Sequence record: LC727695.1
Reading direction: 5' to 3' (one strand)
Length of the DNA: 64,000 nt
The position numbers and the translations under genes were made by a program. The notes under the pieces were generated by a model, which did not search any database, was not told where the DNA came from, and saw only the letters and a list, made by a program, of their open reading frames with translations. This document shows positions 39,454-50,067 of the stretch, one piece after another. Each line of letters starts with the position of its first letter. Within the stretch, counting starts at the first letter, position 1.

Positions 39454-41394
39454 ATGAATAAAATGCTAAACTTCCTAAACCGTACGCTATATAGCGGTAC
39501 TGAAAAAGTATCTTCAAAAGCTACACCAAGTCTAGAACACTTTAAAACAAATGTTGAACAAGTAGATAAAAAGATTCTACAACCCTTTAGTACTAAATTT
39601 AAAACCATTCTAAAAGAATGTTACAGTAATGAGGAGTGGGTTGAAGAACAATCATTTATTGAAGAACCTATTGATCTTGGTTCAGCTGCACGCGGTCTTA
39701 CCGAGCGCGGTATTATGCGTGGTGATTGGGGACGCTTAGCGCATTCCACTATTAAAGAAGCAGAAGGTATGATGCGTACTTATAGTGGTCGTCTAAATGA
39801 AGATATGGAGGCATCTGAAATTAATGAAGTAATTCAAGATATGCCTTATAACTTCACAGCTGGCTCAGCTAATACTAGCCGTTTAGAAGAAGATGACTCT
39901 ATTTTTGTTGAAGCAGATACAACTGTAGTTGAACCTCTGTCTAAGCAGACTCTGCCAAAAGTAGCAGAGCTTACTAATCAATTAGTGGAAGTCTATAACC
40001 GAATTACTGAAGAATTTACAGAAACTGGTATTGCTAAAGTTGAACAAGTTGAACAGCCAGCAGTTCTTTTAGCACTTGGTGAGATCATTAGTAGTTTTAA
40101 TAAACTAATTGATTTATCTTGCGGTGCTCTACCAGTGGAAGAAACTGTTATTGTAGAGGAGGATCCGTTACCTGCCATTGTTACTGGTCCAACTACTGAA
40201 CCCATTGATGGTGAAATTCTACCGGTTGATGCTATTAATAATTCTGCGGCATTAGAAGAATTCATTGAAGAAGTATTAAGTACTAATCCAGAATTCATTA
40301 AATATCAAAGTATGAATGATAGTAATATTGATTCATATCTAACTGGGGATGACTGGATTATACTGAAATTCAAAGATGGTTCTTATTATTTATACAATGC
40401 CCAAAGTGCCGGTGAAACGAATATAGAAATCATGAAAGATATGGCCGAAACTGGTAGTGGTCTTAATGGTTTTATAAATCGGGTTATTCGTGGCGGGTAT
40501 GTAGAGAAGTCCATCATTAATACTCCCGGTTTTATACAAGTCTCAAATGAAGGTCTTATCGATTCAATCAAAAAAGTTCTTGGCATTTCTAATCGAGGTG
40601 ATCAGAAACGTATCTGGCGTTCATCGTCCAGTGCAAGAGGATTTCTGGAACAACTAGAATCTACATTTGGCAATCCACAATGGCTTAATAAGCAGGTATT
40701 CGTTACTGGCGATATCAATAGTAATGGTATAGCTAACGTACTGAGTATTAATGGTAAAGTCAGTATCGAGGATGCCATTCGTGCAGTAGAACCATTCTTC
40801 AAACTCGAAGAAAAGTCTAATCGCGAAATGGAGTCTTACAGGCAGAAGACTAAACCTGCATTGGATCTACTCATTAAGAATGCACATAACCTAGACGCTA
40901 ACGTATACAAAGAAGCAAAGGCTATCGTAGACAAGGCACGTGCTGGATTCAAGACTAGTGTTAAATGGCCTGCCGGTACTATTACAGGTAAGGGTACCTA
41001 TAATTCACCTCGCACCGTGGTCGCGAAATATCCATCTACTGATAGTAAACTCAAAGCTCTTACTGAAGAAGAAGCAGCTAAGGCCATGAACTTAATTATA
41101 TCGGCATTGGAACGTCAGATAACTCTTAGCTTCAAGTTCCCTGATTTACCAGATCCACTGGAAGGACTAATCTACGATATGTTGGATAACCCTAGTCCAA
41201 TAGCTGGTATCGATTACTATGATTGGAATGATTTGTTATTCGCATGCTTTGGCCCTGGGATTGATGATGATGTGATGGAAGTTAATAAAATGCGGCAATA
41301 CCACTCATTCATTGATATCATGGAGGCCGCCGCAAAATGGGTAGATCGGTCTATAAAAGGTAGGTTAGCAATGGGTAATGAAAACTACCAGTAA
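39454..41394 (+). CDS. internal head/ejection protein (gp303-like)
   Basis: 646 aa; S/A/G-X-E prohead protease sites (ALE, SNE-GLIDSIKKVLG, C-terminal GNE); gene order. Confidence 0.7.
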   Translation: MNKMLNFLNRTLYSGTEKVSSKATPSLEHFKTNVEQVDKKILQPFSTKFKTILKECYSNEEWVEEQSFIEEPIDLGSAARGLTERGIMRGDWGRLAHSTIKEAEGMMRTYSGRLNEDMEASEINEVIQDMPYNFTAGSANTSRLEEDDSIFVEADTTVVEPLSKQTLPKVAELTNQLVEVYNRITEEFTETGIAKVEQVEQPAVLLALGEIISSFNKLIDLSCGALPVEETVIVEEDPLPAIVTGPTTEPIDGEILPVDAINNSAALEEFIEEVLSTNPEFIKYQSMNDSNIDSYLTGDDWIILKFKDGSYYLYNAQSAGETNIEIMKDMAETGSGLNGFINRVIRGGYVEKSIINTPGFIQVSNEGLIDSIKKVLGISNRGDQKRIWRSSSSARGFLEQLESTFGNPQWLNKQVFVTGDINSNGIANVLSINGKVSIEDAIRAVEPFFKLEEKSNREMESYRQKTKPALDLLIKNAHNLDANVYKEAKAIVDKARAGFKTSVKWPAGTITGKGTYNSPRTVVAKYPSTDSKLKALTEEEAAKAMNLIISALERQITLSFKFPDLPDPLEGLIYDMLDNPSPIAGIDYYDWNDLLFACFGPGIDDDVMEVNKMRQYHSFIDIMEAAAKWVDRSIKGRLAMGNENYQ

Positions 41395-41407
41395 TGTATC
41401 TAATATT

Positions 41408-41545
41408 ATGTAGAAATAATCCCTCCCCCTTGTTTCTACATTAGTCATAATAGATCGGAGCCAGTCCCCCTTCCAACTGGCTCCCAGAGAGTAAAACTCT
41501 TTGCTGGGCATTAATGACGATATATCGCCTCCCTTCGGGGAGGCT
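41408..41545 (+). ncRNA. candidate sRNA with C-rich anti-SD loops
   Basis: TATG start motif, two 9-bp hairpins with CCCTCCCCC / CCCCCTTCC loops, closing terminator 41527-41544. Confidence 0.55.
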
Positions 41546-41607
41546 TTATATTTTGTTTTTACGTATGTATATTAAAATATGTATAAACAACATAGAGTAA
41601 TTATAAA

Positions 41608-42060
41608 ATGATCAAAAATGAACTTTTACCAGGGCTAATCTATGCCCAAAAAGAATTTGATAAAATTGCAGCTAATGTAAAAGACTATGATAAGTATAAA
41701 AGACGCGAAGCTGGTAGGGCAAGTGCCGTTTTAAGAAGTCTAGTGAGCAATATTGTAAATCAGAATAAACCATCCTCACTTGAACATGAAGGCAAAGTTA
41801 GTACTACTAATACTAATGAATATTTAGAAGAAGTTAATAATTACTTCTTTAACATTAATAATATTAAATTAATTTCTCCTAAACTCATAAAAGAGAAATT
41901 AACAATTGATCTAATGAATATTTATGTTAAATGGAATATGATTGGAGTGGCTGGCCGAAATGATGTTCCAATTATTGAACACAGAATTAATGATTGGTGC
42001 GAAGTGACCGATGTCTACATTAATGGTAATAAGATAACTTCTTTACAATGGCCACGTTGA
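41608..42060 (+). CDS. hypothetical protein
   Basis: 150 aa ORF. Confidence 0.7.
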   Translation: MIKNELLPGLIYAQKEFDKIAANVKDYDKYKRREAGRASAVLRSLVSNIVNQNKPSSLEHEGKVSTTNTNEYLEEVNNYFFNINNIKLISPKLIKEKLTIDLMNIYVKWNMIGVAGRNDVPIIEHRINDWCEVTDVYINGNKITSLQWPR

Positions 42061-42118
42061 ATTTAAAATAAGTTGTAATAAAATACCTAGCATTACATGT
42101 TATGTATTGAAGCACAAT

Positions 42119-42203
42119 GCCCGAATGGTGAAATTGGTAAACACAGAAGACTTAAAATCTTCCGGCTACGGTCTTGTCGGTTCGAATCCGACTTCGGGCA
42201 CCA
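42119..42203 (+). tRNA. tRNA-Leu(UAA)
   Basis: cloverleaf GCCCGAA/TTCGGGC, anticodon TAA, long variable arm, CCA encoded. Confidence 0.97.
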
Positions 42204-42212
42204 ATTTAAATA

Positions 42213-42288
42213 CGGAGTGTAGCGCAGTTGGTAGCGCGCCTGCTTTGGGAGCAGGATGTCGGGAGTTCGAGTCTCCCCACTCCGACCA
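42213..42288 (+). tRNA. tRNA-Pro(UGG)
   Basis: CGGAGTG/CACTCCG, CCTGC-TTTGGGA-GCAGG, CCA. Confidence 0.97.
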
Positions 42289-42309
42289 TTTTAATAATAG
42301 GTAAATAGG

Positions 42310-42603
42310 ATGGATAATAAATGGATATCATGGGAACATCAAATTATAGGAACAGCTCTTTACGCTATTCTTAGTGACCCTGAATTAACTAATATTCAAT
42401 TAGCTCAAGGCTTACACTATCTAACAGAAGCAAAGTCTTCTGTATTACATGTTTGTAATAACCATATTACATTCACTGTAACCTATCCACATGGCACATT
42501 TAGAACCAATGTAATTAGAGAGTGCCCTGCTAGTGATACAAATACATTCAAATGGTCAGGTGTATTAGTCCGTCAAAAAGATGGAACATTCTTACCAGAA
42601 TAA
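42310..42603 (+). CDS. hypothetical protein
   Basis: 97 aa inside the tRNA cluster. Confidence 0.7.
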   Translation: MDNKWISWEHQIIGTALYAILSDPELTNIQLAQGLHYLTEAKSSVLHVCNNHITFTVTYPHGTFRTNVIRECPASDTNTFKWSGVLVRQKDGTFLPE

Positions 42604-42610
42604 ATAAAAA

Positions 42611-42687
42611 GGGCCTATAGCTCAGTTGGTTAGAGCAGGCGACTCATAATCGCTTGGTCGCAGGTTCAAGTCCTGCTGGGCCCACCA
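42611..42687 (+). tRNA. tRNA(CAU), most likely Ile2 (lysidine-modified) rather than Met
   Basis: AGGCGACTCATAATCGCTTGGTCG arm matches remembered enterobacterial ileX. Confidence 0.85.
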
Positions 42688-42739
42688 TATACTAGCCTCC
42701 CACTTGGGGGAGGTTTTATACTGTCTCATTGAGGAAAAC

Positions 42740-42961
42740 ATGAATACAGTAATAATGTTGGTATTATCTATCAAAGTTGGATTATTTGGTTTCATTTCGA
42801 CTAATGAAAGTAATATCCTATTTGAAAATAGGGAACAGTGTATTTCTCATCTGGATATTCTGGAACATAAATACAAGTCTCTTGAAGTTATTCGAAATGA
42901 GAATACTCTAAAGATAACCGAAAGAGATAACCATTCTATTTATATTTTTAAATGTCTCTAG
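42740..42961 (+). CDS. small protein with N-terminal hydrophobic helix
   Basis: ATG after GAGGA (track opens at 42704). Confidence 0.65.
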   Translation: MNTVIMLVLSIKVGLFGFISTNESNILFENREQCISHLDILEHKYKSLEVIRNENTLKITERDNHSIYIFKCL

Positions 42962-42969
42962 GAAAATAC

Positions 42970-43257
42970 ATGGAACATCAAGAACAAAAAGAACTATTGA
43001 GACAACCATTACAAACACTTTATAATCTTACTTTTAGTCCCCGTTTACGTAATGGAGCGAAGGCTCCCGATTGGATTCACCTGACCGATGAAGTAACCCT
43101 ATTCCCAAACGGATTAGATATTACAATCAACGCTGTTACACGTTGCATCAAATGGGAACTTATCGGCGAGGATGTAAGTAACATTACTTATGTTGAAGCT
43201 ATGTTCTTTAATAAAGGTCTTAAAGCAGTTAAAGCCTATCTCAAACATACGGAGTAA
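42970..43257 (+). CDS. hypothetical protein
   Basis: start MEHQE after AGGA (track opens at 42952). Confidence 0.65.
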   Translation: MEHQEQKELLRQPLQTLYNLTFSPRLRNGAKAPDWIHLTDEVTLFPNGLDITINAVTRCIKWELIGEDVSNITYVEAMFFNKGLKAVKAYLKHTE

Positions 43258-43259
43258 AT

Positions 43260-43607
43260 ATGGATCATCTAACCCCAACGCAGAGCGCTGTATATTTCAC
43301 ATTTATTAGCCCTGAGTTTATAAAGCTAACTCTTGTTGAATCTTTTGTAGCGATCCACAAGAAACATCCAGAAGTAAAGCATTGCGTTAAGAAAAAGATT
43401 AGTGCTAATGAAACGCAGTTTATCTTTATCTTCAAAGATGGGACTGATAATTTAATCATTACACGTAAAACTGAACCTTGCCCTGAACTGGATAGCCCAG
43501 TAGGCGATAGTATTAAGTTGTCCGGCGAAGAACTTAAAAATATTCTTGCTAAGTACGATCGTCCCAAGGATGGTAACTATTTCAAGCACTGGACTGATCG
43601 CCCGTAA
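43260..43607 (+). CDS. hypothetical protein
   Basis: 115 aa, GGAG RBS. Confidence 0.7.
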   Translation: MDHLTPTQSAVYFTFISPEFIKLTLVESFVAIHKKHPEVKHCVKKKISANETQFIFIFKDGTDNLIITRKTEPCPELDSPVGDSIKLSGEELKNILAKYDRPKDGNYFKHWTDRP

Positions 43608-43659
43608 TAAAATATTACTGGTTATGTAATACTATGTAGGAAGTCATGTCCATACGTTT

Positions 43660-43736
43660 GCGCTCATAGTTCAGTTGGTTAGAATACCCGCCTGTCACGC
43701 GGGTGGTCAGGGGTTCGAGTCCCCTTGGGCGCGCCA
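43660..43736 (+). tRNA. tRNA-Asp(GUC)
   Basis: GCGCTCA/TGGGCGC, anticodon loop CTGTCAC, CCA. Confidence 0.97.
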
Positions 43737-43742
43737 TTTAAT

Positions 43743-43818
<76 letters not shown>

Positions 43819-43824
43819 TATTCT

Positions 43825-43848
43825 AAAGAGTAGCTTCGGCTACTCTTT
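43825..43848 (+). terminator. terminator after tRNA-Asn
   Basis: AAAGAGTAGC-TTCG-GCTACTCTTT. Confidence 0.9.
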
Positions 43849-43902
43849 TATGTTGCCATGGGTTATCTTATGAATTAAAATGATTTACTTGAGAGCACAC
43901 TC

Positions 43903-44910
43903 ATGTTTGAATTACTATTATCGCCAGATATAGGCGAAGAGTTACCCTTGGTTGGATTTAATGAAATTATTAAATTAGGTGATCTACCTGTAGCGTTAGC
44001 TGGTACAATGTCATATGTGGATGGAAATACACTGTATGTTGGATCTGGTCATCATACTGAAGGACAAACAGCTGCAACTGTGTTCAGACGTTTTACCATA
44101 TCGCCATTTGCCGATATAGGTGCAACTGCTTCTGGAACATTCTTACCAGGGGTATCTTTAGGATTTGGGACATTACATAAGAATAACTTTATTGTTTATG
44201 GCGGTATTACTGGATGGAACTCGGCTGGTAATGGTGGTACGGGAACATCTAACTTTATACAACATTTTGATATAGCTACAGGCAATAGGGTTGAGCGATA
44301 TAGTGGTCCCGTACCACTTTGGGGCACAGCCTCCGCATCAGATGGTAATGATCTTATTCTATGCGTTAACCCAATTGGCGTAAACGCAATGCGATTAAAA
44401 CCATCAAGTAAGTCTTGGCTTAGCGGGCAAGACTATTCAGGTGGTGCTCGTTCAGGTCAACAGTTATTCTTTTATAATGGTTACTTTTACCATTTTGGTG
44501 GTTGGGATAATACAAAGAACATACCTAATCTTGAAGTTTATCGATATAATGCAACTACCTTAATATGGGAGCAAACACCTTGGATGATTATACCTGCTGA
44601 TAAAGGAACAATCTGGCAAGGTAATGGTTATGTAGATGGGGACTATTTTAATTACCTTAACGCTGTTGATGTCGGCGGTGTAACTAAAATGTTTGCACAA
44701 CGTTTTAATATTAGGCGCCGGAAATGGGCTGAACCATTTGAACTAGGTATCGGATTCCTTAATATTTCATCTATAGCTAAAGGTCCGGATAATAGCATGA
44801 TCATTGTAGGTGGATCTAAAATGCCAGTTGGTGGTGGAGCATATATGTTGAAAAGCCAATTGTTATCAGGTATCTATCAGGTAAAACTAGCACCATTAAT
44901 CATTGATTAA
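43903..44910 (+). CDS. Kelch/galactose-oxidase-type beta-propeller protein
   Basis: repeated LYVGSG, FIVYGGI, FYHFGGW, MIIVGG blades followed by Y/W. Confidence 0.8.
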   Translation: MFELLLSPDIGEELPLVGFNEIIKLGDLPVALAGTMSYVDGNTLYVGSGHHTEGQTAATVFRRFTISPFADIGATASGTFLPGVSLGFGTLHKNNFIVYGGITGWNSAGNGGTGTSNFIQHFDIATGNRVERYSGPVPLWGTASASDGNDLILCVNPIGVNAMRLKPSSKSWLSGQDYSGGARSGQQLFFYNGYFYHFGGWDNTKNIPNLEVYRYNATTLIWEQTPWMIIPADKGTIWQGNGYVDGDYFNYLNAVDVGGVTKMFAQRFNIRRRKWAEPFELGIGFLNISSIAKGPDNSMIIVGGSKMPVGGGAYMLKSQLLSGIYQVKLAPLIID

Positions 44911-44959
44911 AATAATAATATTTATAACTATTTAGATAATTATACTGGCACGATGATAT

Positions 44960-45170
44960 TATGTAAGAGTACTATAATAAAGTATTCTTAAATCTATCCA
45001 CTAAACACACTCGGTGGTAGAACTTATTATAGAGTGTGTCTAAATGCCAGGGGTTTGCCACCCCTGGTTATATTCATTGTTACTATTATAAATTCATTTA
45101 TAGATGAGAAAAGGTTTTATCACCTTTTCAAAATCGGCATTTAATTCCAGTTAAAAAACTGAATCTATGC
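44960..45170 (+). ncRNA. candidate structured RNA/leader
   Basis: TATG followed by five hairpins of 7-10 bp. Confidence 0.4.
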
Positions 45171-45194
45171 TACATTGTAATAAAGGAGTCTATT

Positions 45195-45707
45195 ATGACT
45201 AACTCTAATCAGTTTGTAAGAACTATTGTAAAGTACCAAGATATCCTAGATGCTTTAATTCAAAAAACGAATGAGAACTGGGTTAATTATCGATCTAATT
45301 CTATTGGTCATATTGTTATTCGTGAATACAGGACTGTTGGATTATTTGTAGGTCGGCAATGTGGTAGTACAACTGCATTGATTGAGTTTGCTAATCGTCA
45401 TCCTGGCGAATGTCTAGCTGTATTTGTAGAAGATAAAATTAAACAGGCTGTACTGGCTAAGTTCCAGAATGCTAAAGATAATATTGTTTCTTGTTTAATT
45501 ACACACCAACTCCGTAAATATATTCATCAACCTGAGGAATCATCTATTCAAAAAGATATTAAAGAAGAATTAATATCGTCTGTAAAATATATTCTTGTTG
45601 ACAATGCCTCATTTAATCTGAACCTACGCGGTATCACTGATAAAGAATTTAACCAGTGGGTTGCAGATACTTTTGGTACAGAGGTAATGGTGGTTCGTTT
45701 TAGTTAG
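45195..45707 (+). CDS. hypothetical protein with a degenerate P-loop-like motif
   Basis: 170 aa, AAGGAG RBS, LFVGRQCGSTT. Confidence 0.75.
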   Translation: MTNSNQFVRTIVKYQDILDALIQKTNENWVNYRSNSIGHIVIREYRTVGLFVGRQCGSTTALIEFANRHPGECLAVFVEDKIKQAVLAKFQNAKDNIVSCLITHQLRKYIHQPEESSIQKDIKEELISSVKYILVDNASFNLNLRGITDKEFNQWVADTFGTEVMVVRFS

Positions 45708-45868
45708 AATTAGTAACTTTGATAGTTTCTAATAAGATTAACTACACGTTATTTACATAATGTCATAACAAGAAATAAATAATACTCAGATTGTAATAAT
45801 ATGTAGTTATTACATATCTATATTAGGTTGTCAGTAACTCATCTCTAATATAAAATCGCCATAATTCT

Positions 45869-45905
45869 TCCGTGATAGCTCAGTCGGTAGAGCAAGTGAC
45901 TGTTA
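45869..45905 (+). pseudogene. 5' half (nt 1-37) of a split tRNA-Asn
   Basis: identical to 43743-43779; ends after GTT-A. Confidence 0.95.
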
Positions 45906-45914
45906 CGATTTCAT

Positions 45915-46001
45915 TGGTAAGTACCCGAGTGGCAGCAGGGAGCGGACTGTTAATCCGTTGGCGAAAGCCCACCGTAGGTTCGAATCCTACCTTACCAGCC
46001 A
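45915..46001 (+). tRNA. atypical class II (long variable arm) tRNA with GUU (Asn) anticodon
   Basis: TGGTAAG/CTTACCA, G73, CCA; D arm CCCGAGTGGCAGCAGGG; GCGGA-CTGTTAA-TCCGT; V arm GGC-GAAA-GCC; GTAGG-TTCGAAT-CCTAC. Confidence 0.88.
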
Positions 46002-46006
46002 ATTTC

Positions 46007-46032
46007 TAAAAGTAGCCAGCTGGCTACTTTTA
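46007..46032 (+). terminator. perfect 26-bp palindrome/terminator after the nested tRNA
   Basis: TAAAAGTAGCCAG-CTGGCTACTTTTA. Confidence 0.8.
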
Positions 46033-46084
46033 TCTTGTTCTATAGATCGAACTAGCTATCTATTTTTTAAACCCTAGGTTCGAT

Positions 46085-46643
46085 ATGAAAGAAAAAAATA
46101 ATTAATGGTTATCGGGCTCTGTATTTACCTGAACATCGGCAGGCAAAAGCTAACCCCAAAATGTTTGGATGGGTATACGAACACCGTGTAGTCGGTGAAG
46201 ATACAATCGGAAGATCTCTTTACGATGACGAAGAGGTTCATCATTTGGATGAGAACAAACTCAATAACCATCCCGATAATCTTTTGATCCTCCCTCAATC
46301 ACAGCATCTAAAACTACATGCATGGATGAAACGACTGGGCATTGATCCAAAGAACTATCCTACAAAACTTTGTGGTGCTTGTGGTAGGGTAATGAATCAT
46401 AAATTGATTAAATTCTGTAACCCTGAGTGTTCTGCCAAAGGTCGACGTAAGGTTGATCGACCATCTAAAGAACAACTCGTCCTTGACGTTACATTGTTAT
46501 CTCTTGTGAAAATAGGAGAAAAGTATGGGGTATCGGATAATGCAATTCGTAAATGGTGTCGGTCATACAAAATCAATATTCCAGCTAGGTTTATTAGGGT
46601 CAGCACTAATGGGGGTATTAGCACCTTGGCCCCCACACAATAA
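46085..46643 (+). CDS. HNH homing endonuclease (HNH + CxxC/CxxxC zinc ribbon + HTH), frameshifted near the start; in-frame ATG at 46161
   Basis: YEHR...VHHLDENKLNNHPDNL; CGAC...CNPEC; GVSDNAIRKW; upstream GYRALYLPEH lies in the same frame but the ATG at 46085 is out of frame across an A7 run. Confidence 0.88.
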
Positions 46644-46679
46644 AAATATACTCGATGTAGATTAATATACAAAAACATA

Positions 46680-46718
46680 ATCACTGGGTCCCTGGTTCTA
46701 ACCCAGGTCACGGAGCCA
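46680..46718 (+). pseudogene. 3' half (nt 38-76) of the split tRNA-Asn
   Basis: 36/39 identical to 43780-43818; all three differences are in the T loop; CCA present. Confidence 0.95.
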
Positions 46719-46762
46719 ATTCATAGTTTTAGATTTAGTTATATTTCACTACTATGTAAACT

Positions 46763-46788
46763 ATAAAGGCAGCTAATGCTGCCTTTAT
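46763..46788 (+). terminator. terminator after the 3' tRNA half
   Basis: ATAAAGGCAGC-TAAT-GCTGCCTTTAT. Confidence 0.85.
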
Positions 46789-46849
46789 GTCGTCTTGTAA
46801 AAGTACCCAGTAGTTGAATCTTATAGCTGAATACAAATAGGGTAAAGAC

Positions 46850-47035
46850 ATGTCACTTAAAGCATTGCAAGATATAGTTAGTAGTGTTCCTACAAATGAA
46901 CAAAAGGAACGATTAGTTAAAGTTCGGAAAACGATGGAAGAGCTAAATGAGTCTATTAAGAATCAGATTCGTAATAAACGACCTAGTCAAGCTCTTCTCG
47001 ACAAAACGATAAACTGGGGTACCAAGTATGGCTAA
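46850..47035 (+). CDS. small coiled-coil protein
   Basis: 61 aa, overlaps the next gene. Confidence 0.65.
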   Translation: MSLKALQDIVSSVPTNEQKERLVKVRKTMEELNESIKNQIRNKRPSQALLDKTINWGTKYG

Positions 47036-47318
47036 GACATTAGTTCGTGCAAAGCTGATTACTGAAGCTGGTCAATGGATGTCGTCTGACTGGGAATGTG
47101 GTTTCCGTGCATGTCGATTCGTGAAACTTGGTAATGATCATGTAAACATAAAAGACTTTGAGGCTATGATCACGGCATTCGAAGTTGGTGACATGTTAGT
47201 GATTTGGCCAAATGGGCTTAGAACTTCGTATAGTGTGGATAATTTCAATAAGTACTTTTCCCATATCAAAGATGAATACCATGAGACTGATCTCCGTCCA
47301 CTCTTTTACCCCAAGTAG
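47028..47318 (+). CDS. hypothetical protein
   Basis: 96 aa; GDMLVIWPNGLRTSYSVDNFNKYF. Confidence 0.7.
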   Translation: MAKTLVRAKLITEAGQWMSSDWECGFRACRFVKLGNDHVNIKDFEAMITAFEVGDMLVIWPNGLRTSYSVDNFNKYFSHIKDEYHETDLRPLFYPK

Positions 47319-47534
47319 TTGAGCTTATGATAACTATATTCGTGTATAAATACATTACATTCGTTATACCCTTTAATTGATTGAAATCAAGCTACATAAA
47401 AGTGATTGAATGGTCCATGTAGGTGATAATTTTAATAAAGGTAAAGGATTTATCAGAGAATATCTCAGTGCATTTAGGTATTTTATCACTCGCCTATCTA
47501 AATCACATAAAGCCCTTTACCGAGGAATGTGAGA

Positions 47535-47630
47535 ATGTTGGTTGCGATTGATAATACTGGGACAGAATATGATGTCGACCCAACTGATGAAGTAGACGTA
47601 ATGTTTGTATTTAGACCCACACTAAAATAA
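47535..47630 (+). CDS. micro-protein (31 aa) missed by the track
   Basis: GAGGA RBS; MLVAIDNTGTEYDVDPTDEVDVMFVFRPTLK*. Confidence 0.5.
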   Translation: MLVAIDNTGTEYDVDPTDEVDVMFVFRPTLK

Positions 47631-47789
47631 CTTTATATGACTTAATACCCCTCTATATAGAGTGGTCTATTTATAAGTAAAATTATACATAGAGTTAATA
47701 TTATTTGTAGATTAGTTCTACACATAACTCAACTTGAAACCGGGTGTTAATAAAATTTAACACTACGGAAAACATAAAGGTGTATAAAA

Positions 47790-48419
47790 ATGGCTTTTCA
47801 TTTTACTGAAGTAGATTTAAATGATTTTATCAATGAATCAGGTAAAGACTTAAAAATAAATGTTGGTAAACAAACACTAGCAGTTTATGATATCGATAGG
47901 CTAAATATTGTTAATTCAACTATTAATAAACTAGTTTATAATGAACCTATAAGTGAAGAACACATAGATGCATCACTTACAGATAATTCATTAAAAGAGC
48001 TTAATGATTATTTACTAAATGTTGGTGTTACTGAAAGCGCTAAAATGATGATTGATGCTGTGTTAGAATTAAGCGATTATCATAAAAGTGATGAATACTT
48101 TAACCCAATGATGTATAAATTAAAAAGTATGCACACTAAAAATACAGATGGTGTTTATTTGATATTTTTACCAACGCCTACTATCGATGATCAAATTAAC
48201 ACCATGCAAGGGTATATTATCAATAAATCCGGTAATCTCATTAGGACTACTGTACAGTCATGGCGATTTGAGAAAATTGAATTCAAAGACTTAGCCAAAC
48301 ATGATAGACGTTGGTTATTTATTGAATATTACATTAATGTTAAACAAACGAAAAATAATATAATCAAAGAGCAACAAGATGAATTAACTAAATTTATTTA
48401 TTATAGTACTCTAAGTTAA
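47790..48419 (+). CDS. hypothetical protein
   Basis: 209 aa, AAGGTG RBS; ends at terminator 48443-48465. Confidence 0.75.
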   Translation: MAFHFTEVDLNDFINESGKDLKINVGKQTLAVYDIDRLNIVNSTINKLVYNEPISEEHIDASLTDNSLKELNDYLLNVGVTESAKMMIDAVLELSDYHKSDEYFNPMMYKLKSMHTKNTDGVYLIFLPTPTIDDQINTMQGYIINKSGNLIRTTVQSWRFEKIEFKDLAKHDRRWLFIEYYINVKQTKNNIIKEQQDELTKFIYYSTLS

Positions 48420-48475
48420 AACAAATAAAAAATAAATATAAGAGCTAGCCCCTAATGGGCTAGCTTTATGTTATC

Positions 48476-48613
48476 TTACTCTGCTACATCTTTTACATCA
48501 GGTTTATTATTCCAACGTACTGCTCTCGCAATACCATACGTAAGAATAAGAGCACCCACGGTGCCAATAGTGGTGCTAATAATAATGCCAAGAGTTTTTG
48601 GATCAATATTCAT
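48476..48613 (-). CDS. small single-TM early protein (45 aa) missed by the track
   Basis: MNIDPKTLGIIISTTIGTVGALILTYGIARAVRW...; own early promoter and AGGA RBS. Confidence 0.7.
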   Translation of the reverse strand: MNIDPKTLGIIISTTIGTVGALILTYGIARAVRWNNKPDVKDVAE

Positions 48614-48669
48614 ATTTAGTATCCTATTTACAATTAATAGAAAATATTACTTTTAGTAATATCACATTT

Positions 48670-48697
48670 GTAATATACCTTTTAAATAGGTTTGAAT
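48670..48697 (-). promoter_or_regulatory. early vRNAP promoter
   Basis: ATTCAAACCTATTTAAAAGGTATATTAC on the minus strand. Confidence 0.85.
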
Positions 48698-48761
48698 ATA
48701 ACTTTATTTATTATAATAAATTAAAATAATACTTTCATATACACTATATGTAGAAGATTAC

Positions 48762-48838
48762 GCCGCTATAGCTCAGCTAGGTAGAGCAACGCACTTGTAA
48801 TGCGTAGGTCCTCCGTTCGATTCGGAGTGGCGGCACCA
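48762..48838 (+). tRNA. tRNA-Thr(UGU)
   Basis: GCCGCTA/TGGCGGC, ACGCA-CTTGTAA-TGCGT, CCA. Confidence 0.97.
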
Positions 48839-48967
48839 AATTTACTGAGGTTTAAACTATTCTTAAATATATTAGTTAGGATGGGATTGAACGTGAAAGA
48901 CTCAGTAAATCATATTGCCCCTCCATATGGAGGGGCTTATGTTTGTCATTAATCAGGAAAATATAAA

Positions 48968-49144
48968 ATGAGTCATCTATTATTTATCATCCAAGAATAT
49001 ATTACTAATAAATTTGAGATAACACGAATTGACATGAAGACAGGCAATAGAATGTTACGTGTATGTGTATACGGTCAACATGATGGAAAAGGTTTCGTCC
49101 GTGTAGATTTATGGTCAGTTGGTTATCGTATTACAAAGAAATAA
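48968..49144 (+). CDS. small protein (58 aa) missed by the track
   Basis: AGGA RBS; MSHLLFIIQEY...GYRITKK*. Confidence 0.6.
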   Translation: MSHLLFIIQEYITNKFEITRIDMKTGNRMLRVCVYGQHDGKGFVRVDLWSVGYRITKK

Positions 49145-49186
49145 TACTCCAGATTATTTAATATGTATTGATCAAAGGAGTTTATA

Positions 49187-49597
49187 ATGAGTAATGAAAC
49201 TAACTATCTAGGTTATGAATGGAAAACAGATATAACTACTTCAAATCTTAATAGAGTAGTTGATTTATATACACTTGAATTAGCATGGCTAAAAGAAGAT
49301 TTTAATGATACTCTTTTTATAAAGTCTTATAAAGTACTAGAGGGTTTATTAGAAGAGCCATCTAGGGCAATCCATGATGATACAGTGTCCATTCAAAATC
49401 AATTAGATGAATTAAATACTGTTTTTAAATTAGTATTTGGAAAAGATAATGATGTAGAGTTATCAATTAATAATGATTCAATTATTGTAATCGGCACTAC
49501 ATATGCAACTAAAGAAAAGTTAGAAGTAGAGGTACGTGAGTTTGCATATAGGAAATCATTAATTGATGAACGTTATCCAGATATTGTAACGGATTAA
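49187..49597 (+). CDS. hypothetical protein
   Basis: 136 aa, AAGGAG RBS. Confidence 0.75.
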   Translation: MSNETNYLGYEWKTDITTSNLNRVVDLYTLELAWLKEDFNDTLFIKSYKVLEGLLEEPSRAIHDDTVSIQNQLDELNTVFKLVFGKDNDVELSINNDSIIVIGTTYATKEKLEVEVREFAYRKSLIDERYPDIVTD

Positions 49598-49677
49598 AAT
49601 ACTTACAGCTATCTAGTATGTAACTAGGCGGATTGCCATTTGTAAATTATCTATTTAATCAAACTGAGGAAATACTA

Positions 49678-50067
49678 ATGAAACAATTCTTTCAACTAAT
49701 TCTAAGTCTGCTTTTCAAGCTACCCATTCTATCACACATTGCTGAGAAAAAACGACTGGAGAAAGAGAAAAAGGAAGAAGAGAAACGCCAGCAGAAGCAG
49801 CGTCAGAAAGAACTACTTGAAGTCCTACGTCGGGAACAGGAAGATCAATATCGTAAGACTGCATATGCACGCTTAGCAAAACTTATTCATACCCGTTGGT
49901 ATGATGAATTTAATGCATATGAACGCAAACTAGTGGATCTTGCAGTATCTGGTGGTTACGCTATTAGTGTTAAATACGGTAAAGTAACTAAGATGCAACA
50001 CCCTCAACAATTTAAACTACTTAATGATTGGCTAGATGATATTCCAGTAGAAGATTATTCTAAGTGA
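49678..50067 (+). CDS. protein with N-terminal amphipathic helix and charged coiled coil
   Basis: start MKQFF after GAGGA (track opens at 49633). Confidence 0.7.
   Translation: MKQFFQLILSLLFKLPILSHIAEKKRLEKEKKEEEKRQQKQRQKELLEVLRREQEDQYRKTAYARLAKLIHTRWYDEFNAYERKLVDLAVSGGYAISVKYGKVTKMQHPQQFKLLNDWLDDIPVEDYSK

Follow-up and report, generated by a model that had tools for sequence, protein, structure and literature searches.

What is a tRNA gene with a long variable arm and an asparagine anticodon doing inside another tRNA-Asn gene, and which amino acid would its product carry? The gene lies in sequence record LC727695.1, of which a stretch of 64,000 nucleotides (the window) was analyzed. The window belongs to a phiKZ-type jumbo phage of Pseudomonas aeruginosa, and in the region tested its identity was 100% with phage Brmt and 99.8% with phiKZ. 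Textbooks limit the long-arm tRNAs of bacteria to Leu, Ser, Tyr, and Sec. An earlier note on this DNA, made from the letters alone, proposed either a tRNA-Tyr retargeted to Asn, possibly to evade host anticodon nucleases, or a tRNA that inserts Tyr at AAY codons.

The gene is genuine but unusual and encodes a tRNA-Asn of class II, with a long variable arm. It lies in a 774-bp cassette that splits an ordinary tRNA-Asn gene and also holds an HNH endonuclease gene. On balance, we favor a homing cassette that supplies a substitute for the tRNA-Asn it disrupts, and the substitute is probably charged through the nondiscriminating aspartyl-tRNA synthetase (ND-AspRS) and GatCAB. The split gene and the HNH cassette, which were not part of the earlier note, supply most of the local explanation.

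The long-arm tRNA

ARAGORN calls a tRNA at exactly 45915-46001 on the + strand. It is 87 nt long and has a GTT anticodon at position 35. The Rfam tRNA model (RF00005) scores the same stretch at 53.7 bits (E = 1.3e-9; gathering score, 29), and in the alignment the variable region is extended by a long insertion. Folded by minimum free energy, nt 1-84 form a cloverleaf with an extra hairpin. The acceptor stem, TGGTAAG/CTTACCA, gives U1-A72 and is followed by G73 and an encoded CCA. The D arm is CCC-GAGTGGCAGCA-GGG, the anticodon arm is GCGGA-CTGTTAA-TCCGT, the variable arm is GGC-GAAA-GCC, and the T arm is GTAGG-TTCGAAT-CCTAC. All of the features that the earlier note had listed for the 87-nt molecule were present, including GTT, U1-A72, G73, the D arm, and the GAAA-capped variable arm. 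The anticodon arm, GCGGACUGUUAAUCCGU, is what we take to be that of Escherichia coli tRNA-Asn.

The gene is followed by a terminator-like hairpin (46007-46032) with an 11-pair stem and a T-rich tail, which resembles the hairpin after the intact ordinary tRNA-Asn gene of the window (copy 1). The class II tRNA is 95 to 100% conserved in relatives whose flanks are only about 82% identical. This conservation, like the strong covariation within its family (see below), exceeds what chance would produce. Its RNA (PHIKZ_t02) reached about 4,400 to 32,000 reads per kilobase per million mapped reads during infection, similar to the ordinary PHIKZ_t03 (supplement, PMC12571901), values that show abundance rather than processing or charging.

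The tRNA region of the window encodes Leu, Pro, Met, Asp, Asn, Asn, and Thr tRNAs (ARAGORN). Asn makes up 6.2% of the codons in the long open reading frames (ORFs) of the window, and AAT makes up 70% of the Asn codons. With this demand, the phage has a reason to want a tRNA-Asn.

Amino acid identity

The class II tRNA shares GUU, the loop CUGUUAA, U1-A72, G73, and an encoded CCA with bacterial type I tRNA-Asn, including copy 1. GUU and G73 are tRNA-Asn determinants, and U1-A72 is a GatCAB determinant. The architecture differs from type I. The variable region is 14 nt with a 3-bp stem and a GAAA cap, where type I has a 5-nt loop. The D stem is 3 bp with an enlarged, Tyr-like D loop, and the acceptor and T stems are unrelated.

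Its likeness to bacterial tRNA-Tyr is one of resemblance only: both are class II, with a short stem in the long variable arm and a D arm of the CCCGAG..GG...GGG type. It has GUU rather than GUA, G73 rather than A73, and U1-A72 rather than G1-C72. It is also not a tRNA-Ser despite G73, with U1-A72 as the first pair, an unconserved 2-71 pair, and a variable stem of 3 bp, where tRNA-Ser has G1-C72, G2-C71, and a long variable stem. Judged on these features, it appears to behave as a tRNA-Asn, but it falls outside the architectural definition of tRNA-Asn and has none of the acceptor-end features of tRNA-Tyr.

Published identity rules are consistent with Asn. Asparaginyl-tRNA synthetase (AsnRS) reads the anticodon and G73, and ND-AspRS differs from the discriminating enzyme mainly in accepting U36 (PMC9976931; PMC2330236). 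Bacterial GatCAB requires U1-A72 (PMC9976931; PMC2330236). P. aeruginosa makes Asn-tRNA through ND-AspRS and GatCAB (PMC2330236). G73 is listed as an antideterminant against the tyrosyl- and leucyl-tRNA synthetases (TyrRS and LeuRS) (PMC9976931).

Family of long-arm Asn tRNAs

We searched for relatives with a pattern of the D arm and T loop in which the anticodon was left free. This anticodon-blind scan retrieved 46 tRNAs from 42 IMG/VR viral loci, and all of them read GTT. The same scan of one genome per species for 185,579 bacterial and archaeal species retrieved five loci. All five were tRNA arrays on contigs of metagenome-assembled genomes (MAGs), and all read GTT. U1, A72, and G73 were invariant in the distinct family sequences (40/40). 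In these 40 sequences 99% of the stem cells are paired, and 17 of the 23 stem pairs have changed on both sides. None of 500 shuffles reached the observed values, and no shifted register came close. Acceptor pairs 2 to 6 vary freely (2-71 is GC in 21 sequences and CG in 17) while 1-72 never does, as expected for an identity element. The combination of a class II body with an Asn anticodon and acceptor end, which the earlier note had read from one sequence, thus holds in all 40.

A looser scan accepted any GTT tRNA with a long variable region and returned at least 120 loci. It contained at least 83 distinct long-arm Asn tRNAs in phages, with several types of D arm. These alleles occur in T5-like and rV5-like coliphages, in Providencia phages, and in T4-like phages of Serratia, Aeromonas, and Erwinia. 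Among 72 phage arrays with a long-arm tRNA-Asn and at least 10 tRNAs, 61 had no ordinary tRNA-Asn in the stretch examined, and 51 held a separate tRNA-Tyr. The lineage to which the class II tRNA of the window belongs is large, old, diverse, and essentially restricted to viruses.

GTA and A73, the signs by which the earlier note would know a point mutation of tRNA-Tyr, were absent from the relatives found by the anticodon-blind scans of IMG/VR and the 185,579 species genomes. A recent tRNA-Tyr point mutant was considered and is ruled out by these scans, in which every member read GTT. The D arm does look like that of tRNA-Tyr, as the earlier note said. Tyr is the closest canonical isotype when the class II tRNA is aligned among phage tRNAs. 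The only match in E. coli genomes was also a tRNA-Tyr; it was marginal (E = 0.7) and says little about origin. The part of the earlier note that stands is a real class II tRNA with an Asn-type anticodon arm and acceptor end. Its recent or local conversion from tRNA-Tyr does not stand, given an old, diverse, virus-restricted lineage with no GTA member and the normal tRNA-Tyr genes present in 51 of the 72 arrays. Phage BRkr also has a tRNA-Tyr (GTA, A73), and its D arm is unrelated to that of the class II tRNA-Asn. The proposed insertion of Tyr fares no better and is weighed below with the other explanations.

The members from Pseudomonas phages all have U1-A72, as does that of Erwinia phage Cronus. 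Those of the other enterobacterial phages and of Aeromonas phages have G1-C72. We considered U1-A72 as a marker of hosts that lack AsnRS. The data fit this idea but do not discriminate; all of the Pseudomonas cases belong to one lineage.

The long-arm phenomenon is not limited to Asn. Long variable arms were also seen on tRNA-Lys CTT (phage CcrColossus, locus L008, 600-689), Ile GAT, Cys GCA, and Trp CCA in phage arrays. The extra arm is often GAAA capped in these tRNAs (loci L052, L047, L050, L045, L122, L054, and L021). Met, Thr, and Glu genes of at least 82 nt are known by length only.

The tRNA-Asn of T5 is of type I and 78 nt long, and its anticodon stem is mismatched (L247, 13953-14030; NC_005859, 33952-34029). 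SHSML-45 and many T5-like phages have an 83-nt long-arm tRNA-Asn (L006, 576-658) with the same downstream flank as that of T5. T5.081, which lies further along from the T5 gene, is annotated as a "tRNA amidotransferase." The function of T5 tRNA-Asn in E. coli (PMC12409363) was considered as proof for the class II tRNA and set aside. The T5 gene is the ordinary 78-nt form, and the evidence does not transfer because the class II allele sits in other T5-like phages and not in T5.

Other observations were made in the phage arrays. ARAGORN reported possible suppressor tRNAs with the amber anticodon CTA in L181, L198, L221, L223, L225, L226, and L239. A possible ochre suppressor with anticodon TTA was reported in L197 (370-440). 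A full-length ROOL RNA (Rfam RF03087; 320 bits) lies beside the tRNA array of one viral contig (L202, 3379-3968).

Split tRNA-Asn gene and cassette

The sequences at 45869-45905 and 46680-46718 are the halves of a second ordinary tRNA-Asn gene (copy 2), which is cut in the anticodon loop between nt 37 and 38. In phage 30-1 (L002, 4270-4345) and about 29 other Phikzvirus records the halves are contiguous and form a normal 76-nt tRNA-Asn. The 774 bp at 45906-46679 are therefore an insert. The alignment with the cassette-free phages is 100% identical up to window position 45905 and stops exactly there. The insert thus has the mark of a homing cassette, in that it interrupts a conserved target at one exact position in some close relatives and is missing there in others. 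The order within it is spacer, class II tRNA, terminator, and the HNH_3 gene phiKZ296 (Table 1). The 5' half may now serve as a leader for the class II tRNA, to judge by its position.

The T loop of copy 2 is unusual. It is TTCTAAC (46697-46703), with a pyrimidine at position 57, where copy 1 has TTCGAGT. Copy 2 may be the weaker of the two paralogues; alternatively, the difference may bear on the specificity of the endonuclease.

Table 1. Features of the tRNA-Asn region in the window
Feature	Coordinates	Strand	Basis or remark
Intact ordinary type I tRNA-Asn(GTT), copy 1	43743..43818	+	ARAGORN, Rfam; paralogue of the split gene and possible second target
5' half (nt 1-37, through A37) of split type I tRNA-Asn(GTT), copy 2	45869..45905	+	Identical to nt 1-37 of copy 1
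Inserted cassette, 774 bp; ends ambiguous by the dinucleotide TA	45906..46679	+	Absent from phages with 100% identical flanks
9-nt spacer CGATTTCAT between dead 5' half and class II tRNA	45906..45914	+	Sequence
Class II tRNA (PHIKZ_t02) with GTT, U1-A72, G73, and encoded CCA	45915..46001	+	ARAGORN, Rfam, fold, covariation
Intrinsic-terminator-like hairpin directly 3' of class II tRNA	46007..46032	+	Terminator scan
HNH_3 homing-endonuclease reading frame, phiKZ296	46086..46643	+	ORF list, Pfam HNH_3, PA1C orthologue
3' half (nt 38-76, with CCA) of split type I tRNA-Asn	46680..46718	+	Completes the 5' half exactly; compare the gene of phage 30-1

Alleles in related phages

The full cassette was found at the site of copy 2 (site 2) in 10 phiKZ-type records. 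In eight records, copy 1 (site 1) has given way to the 5' half, followed by the same spacer and then the class II tRNA, and there is no HNH gene. The 3' junction of these site-1 alleles falls within similar terminator regions. No second site copy was matched in OMKO1, T2P, U1B, U5, or phi9_PA9. In the regions examined of OMKO1 and T2P, the class II tRNA is the only tRNA-Asn. In these two phages a G34-to-T mutation has altered the anticodon that remains in the 5' half, and the same 9-nt spacer accompanies the tRNA.

The PA1C group (four records; flanks about 82% identical) has the same order of 5' half, tRNA, HNH gene, and 3' half. The anticodon is gone from the 5' half, and the anticodon-stem strand is deleted from the 3' half. 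Identity is 95% for the class II tRNA and 88% for the HNH protein. Phage BRkr contains seven tRNAs, and the class II tRNA is its sole tRNA-Asn. The Pseudomonas syringae phage Psa21 and a jumbo contig from IMG/VR keep the pair of tRNA and HNH gene (63 to 65% protein identity), with the halves almost erased. Overall, 22 Pseudomonas phage records have the class II tRNA in identical or nearly identical form, and the identity in Psa21 is 88.6%. The class II tRNA persists while what is left of the ordinary gene decays, which argues against splicing and for functional replacement.

The HNH endonuclease

The phiKZ296 protein matches Pfam HNH_3, a homing-endonuclease family, with E = 1e-9 to 1e-10. Its C-terminal part looks like a zinc ribbon and a helix-turn-helix. 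The first in-frame ATG is at 46161 and gives 160 amino acids, compared with 185 in the PA1C orthologue. The ancestral ATG at 46085 is out of frame through one extra A in an A7 run (46092-46098) relative to PA1C and BRkr. The annotated gene starts at an internal Met. Either decay or slippage along the A run could account for this. Antisense knockdown of phiKZ296 gave a weak phenotype only, and the gene is classed as non-core (PMC12571901).

Relatives of phiKZ296, chiefly of its C-terminal part, have tRNA genes within 2.5 kb in 77 of 80 viral loci. At locus L167 (465-1142), an ORF for a 43%-identical HNH protein is inserted after nt 37 of a tRNA-Lys(TTT). The context is TGACTTTTA^ATCA there and TGACTGTTA^ATCA in the window. 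This insertion at the matching position supports site-specific homing into anticodon loops.

Other phage tRNA genes are split in the anticodon loop by ORFs for PDDEXK_5 (I-Ssp6803I-type) nucleases (L190, 1937-2818; L202, 1893-2815; L212, 4229-4979). The split genes of L167, L190, L202, and L212 include Lys TTT and a TGG-anticodon tRNA. The nucleases of L190 and L202 share the C-terminal domain of phiKZ296, and that of L212 has NUMOD1. Rfam found no group I intron in the four inserts, each of which has about 40 nt of noncoding sequence. In L190, L202, and L212, the ends of the insert pair with each other and with the anticodon loop and so lengthen the anticodon stem. When folded, these three look like intron-containing pre-tRNAs that lack a ribozyme.

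Proposed mechanism

In the homing-cassette explanation, when related phages co-infect a cell, the HNH enzyme would cut their ordinary tRNA-Asn genes near TGACTGTTA^ATCA. The cut gene would then be repaired from a cassette-bearing genome, and the cassette would be copied into it. The insertion would destroy both the target site and the resident tRNA, and the cassette would compensate with its own replacement tRNA-Asn. The resident tRNA promoter would transcribe the replacement, and the dead 5' half would form a leader that RNase P removes. P. aeruginosa has no AsnRS, and ND-AspRS would aspartylate the class II tRNA through GUU and G73. GatCAB would amidate the Asp-charged tRNA through U1-A72, and AAY codons would be read as Asn.

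The replacement gene is probably not cut, because all that it has in common with the target is the 11-bp anticodon-loop core GACTGTTAATC and because the extra arm places its T arm at a different distance. That so little is shared makes immunity to the endonuclease plausible.

Several points weigh against this explanation. The D loop of the class II tRNA is enlarged by extra nucleotides. In tRNA-Asp and tRNA-Glu, one additional base in this loop acts as an antideterminant for GatCAB (PMC9976931; PMC2330236), and by that rule the enlarged loop weighs against easy charging with Asn. The attached amino acid is predicted to be Asn from published identity rules. Presence and absence among relatives cannot by itself separate gain of the cassette from its precise loss. 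Class IIb synthetases approach the tRNA from the side of the variable loop, and the long arm might interfere with such an enzyme. Phages can often do without their tRNAs, and selection for compensation is therefore not a necessity. The immunity of the class II gene to the HNH enzyme is a conjecture. The frameshift strips about 25 N-terminal codons from the HNH frame of the window. Up to and including the T stem, copy 1 (43743-43818) presents the enzyme with an identical sequence, but all 10 of the cassette genomes still have it intact. The enzyme may be inactive, it may be excluded, or it may be more specific than assumed. The frameshift and the survival of copy 1 together suggest that the phiKZ enzyme may be weakened or more specific than assumed.

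Alternative explanations

If the 774-bp insert were an intron, the split tRNA-Asn would be spliced and functional and the class II tRNA merely embedded in it. We consider this very improbable. The insertion is at 37/38, the classical position of tRNA introns, both halves are intact in the window, and related endonuclease ORFs lie in other phage anticodon loops with intron-like extended helices. However, the Rfam group I and group II intron models had no match at E <= 1 in 41000-50000, where only tRNAs and noise were returned, and both intron types were rejected on this ground. The insert neither begins after a U nor ends in a G, it has too little noncoding RNA for a ribozyme, and it contains a terminator after the embedded tRNA. 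When the exon-intron junctions were co-folded, no helix joined the ends of the insert in the window or in PA1C, unlike in L190, L202, and L212. The halves are decayed or mutated in PA1C, BRkr, Psa21, and OMKO1 while the class II tRNA is conserved. A protein-spliced or helix-type intron at this locus was rejected on these last two points. A still weaker case is a decaying or point-mutated tRNA-Tyr, or a sequencing artifact, with no function. Only one base separates GTA from GTT, and the D arm is Tyr-like. This reading is already refuted by the conservation in 22 Pseudomonas phage records and in Psa21 and by the covarying stems of a family in which 46/46 viral and 5/5 MAG tRNAs read GTT; the RNA is also abundant in infection (PMC12571901). 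The third alternative is mis-decoding, in which TyrRS or seryl-tRNA synthetase (SerRS), or ND-AspRS without amidation, would place Tyr, Ser, or Asp at AAY codons. Nematode nev-tRNAs are a precedent for class II tRNAs with the anticodon of another family, and the D arm is again Tyr-like. SerRS ignores the anticodon and reads the long arm and G73 (PMC7609411), and the extra D-loop bases would act against GatCAB (PMC9976931; PMC2330236). Against this, G73 opposes TyrRS and LeuRS (PMC9976931), and the variable stem has only 3 pairs. U1-A72 is invariant and the 2-71 pair varies freely. That pair matters for SerRS. The arrays also hold normal tRNA-Tyr and tRNA-Ser genes. In 61 of the 72 large arrays and in OMKO1, T2P, and BRkr, no tRNA other than the long-arm one decodes Asn, so mis-decoding would mean proteome-wide replacement of Asn. 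We regard it as improbable, and the insertion of Tyr at AAY codons that the earlier note had offered as an option is unlikely in view of G73 and of the arrays in which the tRNA is the sole decoder of Asn.

Evasion of nucleases may instead be the main reason for the class II body, with the HNH gene merely as vehicle. This proposal concerns the selective advantage and is compatible with the homing-cassette explanation; we give it a minority share of our belief. What keeps it plausible is AriB, the nuclease of the PARIS system, which cuts E. coli tRNA-Asn(GUU) between nt 40 and 41; infection is rescued by variant phage tRNAs (PMC12409363). In phiKZ, the ordinary tRNA-Asn has UAAUC|A41, as in the best AriB substrate, and the class II tRNA has UAAUC|C41. 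The change of A41 to C is one of two resistance changes in T5 tRNA-Lys (PMC12409363). Phage arrays also hold long-arm Lys, Thr, Ile, Cys, and Trp tRNAs. On the other side, the AriB work covers type I tRNAs, and the T5 tRNA-Asn used there is the ordinary 78-nt form. The anticodon loop is the same in the class II and ordinary tRNA-Asn, and most Phikzvirus isolates manage with ordinary copies alone. A broader form of the idea, which we hold to be rather unlikely, is that long arms on normally type I phage tRNAs (Asn, but also Lys, Ile, Cys, Trp, Thr, and Met) are escape adaptations in a tRNA arms race. At the DNA level, phage tRNA arrays are infested with endonucleases that insert at nt 37/38, and the extra arm would alter both the spacing and the sequence that these enzymes recognize. 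At the RNA level, the arm may get in the way of host defenses that cleave tRNA, such as AriB. If so, the phiKZ cassette would be a drive element that destroys a sensitive tRNA-Asn allele and installs a resistant one, and the nuclease and the tRNA would form a poison-antidote system.

Comparison with known systems

By their sequence and arrangement, the class II tRNA and its cassette resemble a tRNA-Asn and a free-standing homing endonuclease cassette and do not resemble an intron. Free-standing homing endonuclease genes include SegB of T4 and the heg genes of T5, some of which are named F-Tfl. Like the cassette, they place a nuclease gene among phage tRNA genes, differ in presence between close relatives, and carry neighboring markers along. 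Several heg genes are annotated in the tRNA region of T5, and T4 SegB is presumably located in that of T4. The phiKZ element differs from them in that it sits inside a tRNA anticodon loop and carries a complete tRNA of different structure with the same anticodon.

Group I introns with homing endonucleases (the tRNA-fMet intron, I-Ssp6803I) also place the endonuclease gene in a tRNA anticodon loop. The DNA-binding part of phiKZ296 has relatives in other phage tRNA genes, where they are fused to PDDEXK_5 (I-Ssp6803I-type) nucleases. The cassette differs from these introns in that it has no ribozyme, and function would be restored, if at all, by a second tRNA gene rather than through splicing. 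Nematode nev-tRNAs and bacterial allo-tRNAs, like the class II tRNA-Asn, combine a long arm with an anticodon outside Leu, Ser, and Tyr. They keep Leu, Ser, or Ala identity elements and mistranslate, whereas the class II tRNA-Asn has an Asn-type acceptor end and, unlike them, is the sole tRNA-Asn in most of the arrays that carry it.

The gene has long been annotated as "tRNA-Asn" in GenBank, and papers on phiKZ merely list a "tRNA-Asn." In the literature covered, from which older papers on T5 and T4-like tRNAs were left out, we found no description of the class II architecture, the family, the cassette, or an arrangement that carries a replacement.

Significance

A conserved and widespread long-arm tRNA-Asn would raise the question of whether AsnRS, or ND-AspRS with GatCAB, tolerates the extra arm. 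It would also raise the question of what makes phages favor such a body and whether it could be a natural scaffold for the design of orthogonal tRNAs. phiKZ and OMKO1 are model and therapeutic phages with different tRNA-Asn alleles, and any link to defense would bear on host range. The local context suggests how a selfish nuclease gene could reside inside an RNA gene without splicing, by carrying a replacement gene. If true, two things would surprise specialists. One is a conserved fourth family of bacterial-type long-arm tRNAs, and the other is a nuclease that travels with a substitute for the very gene that it destroys.

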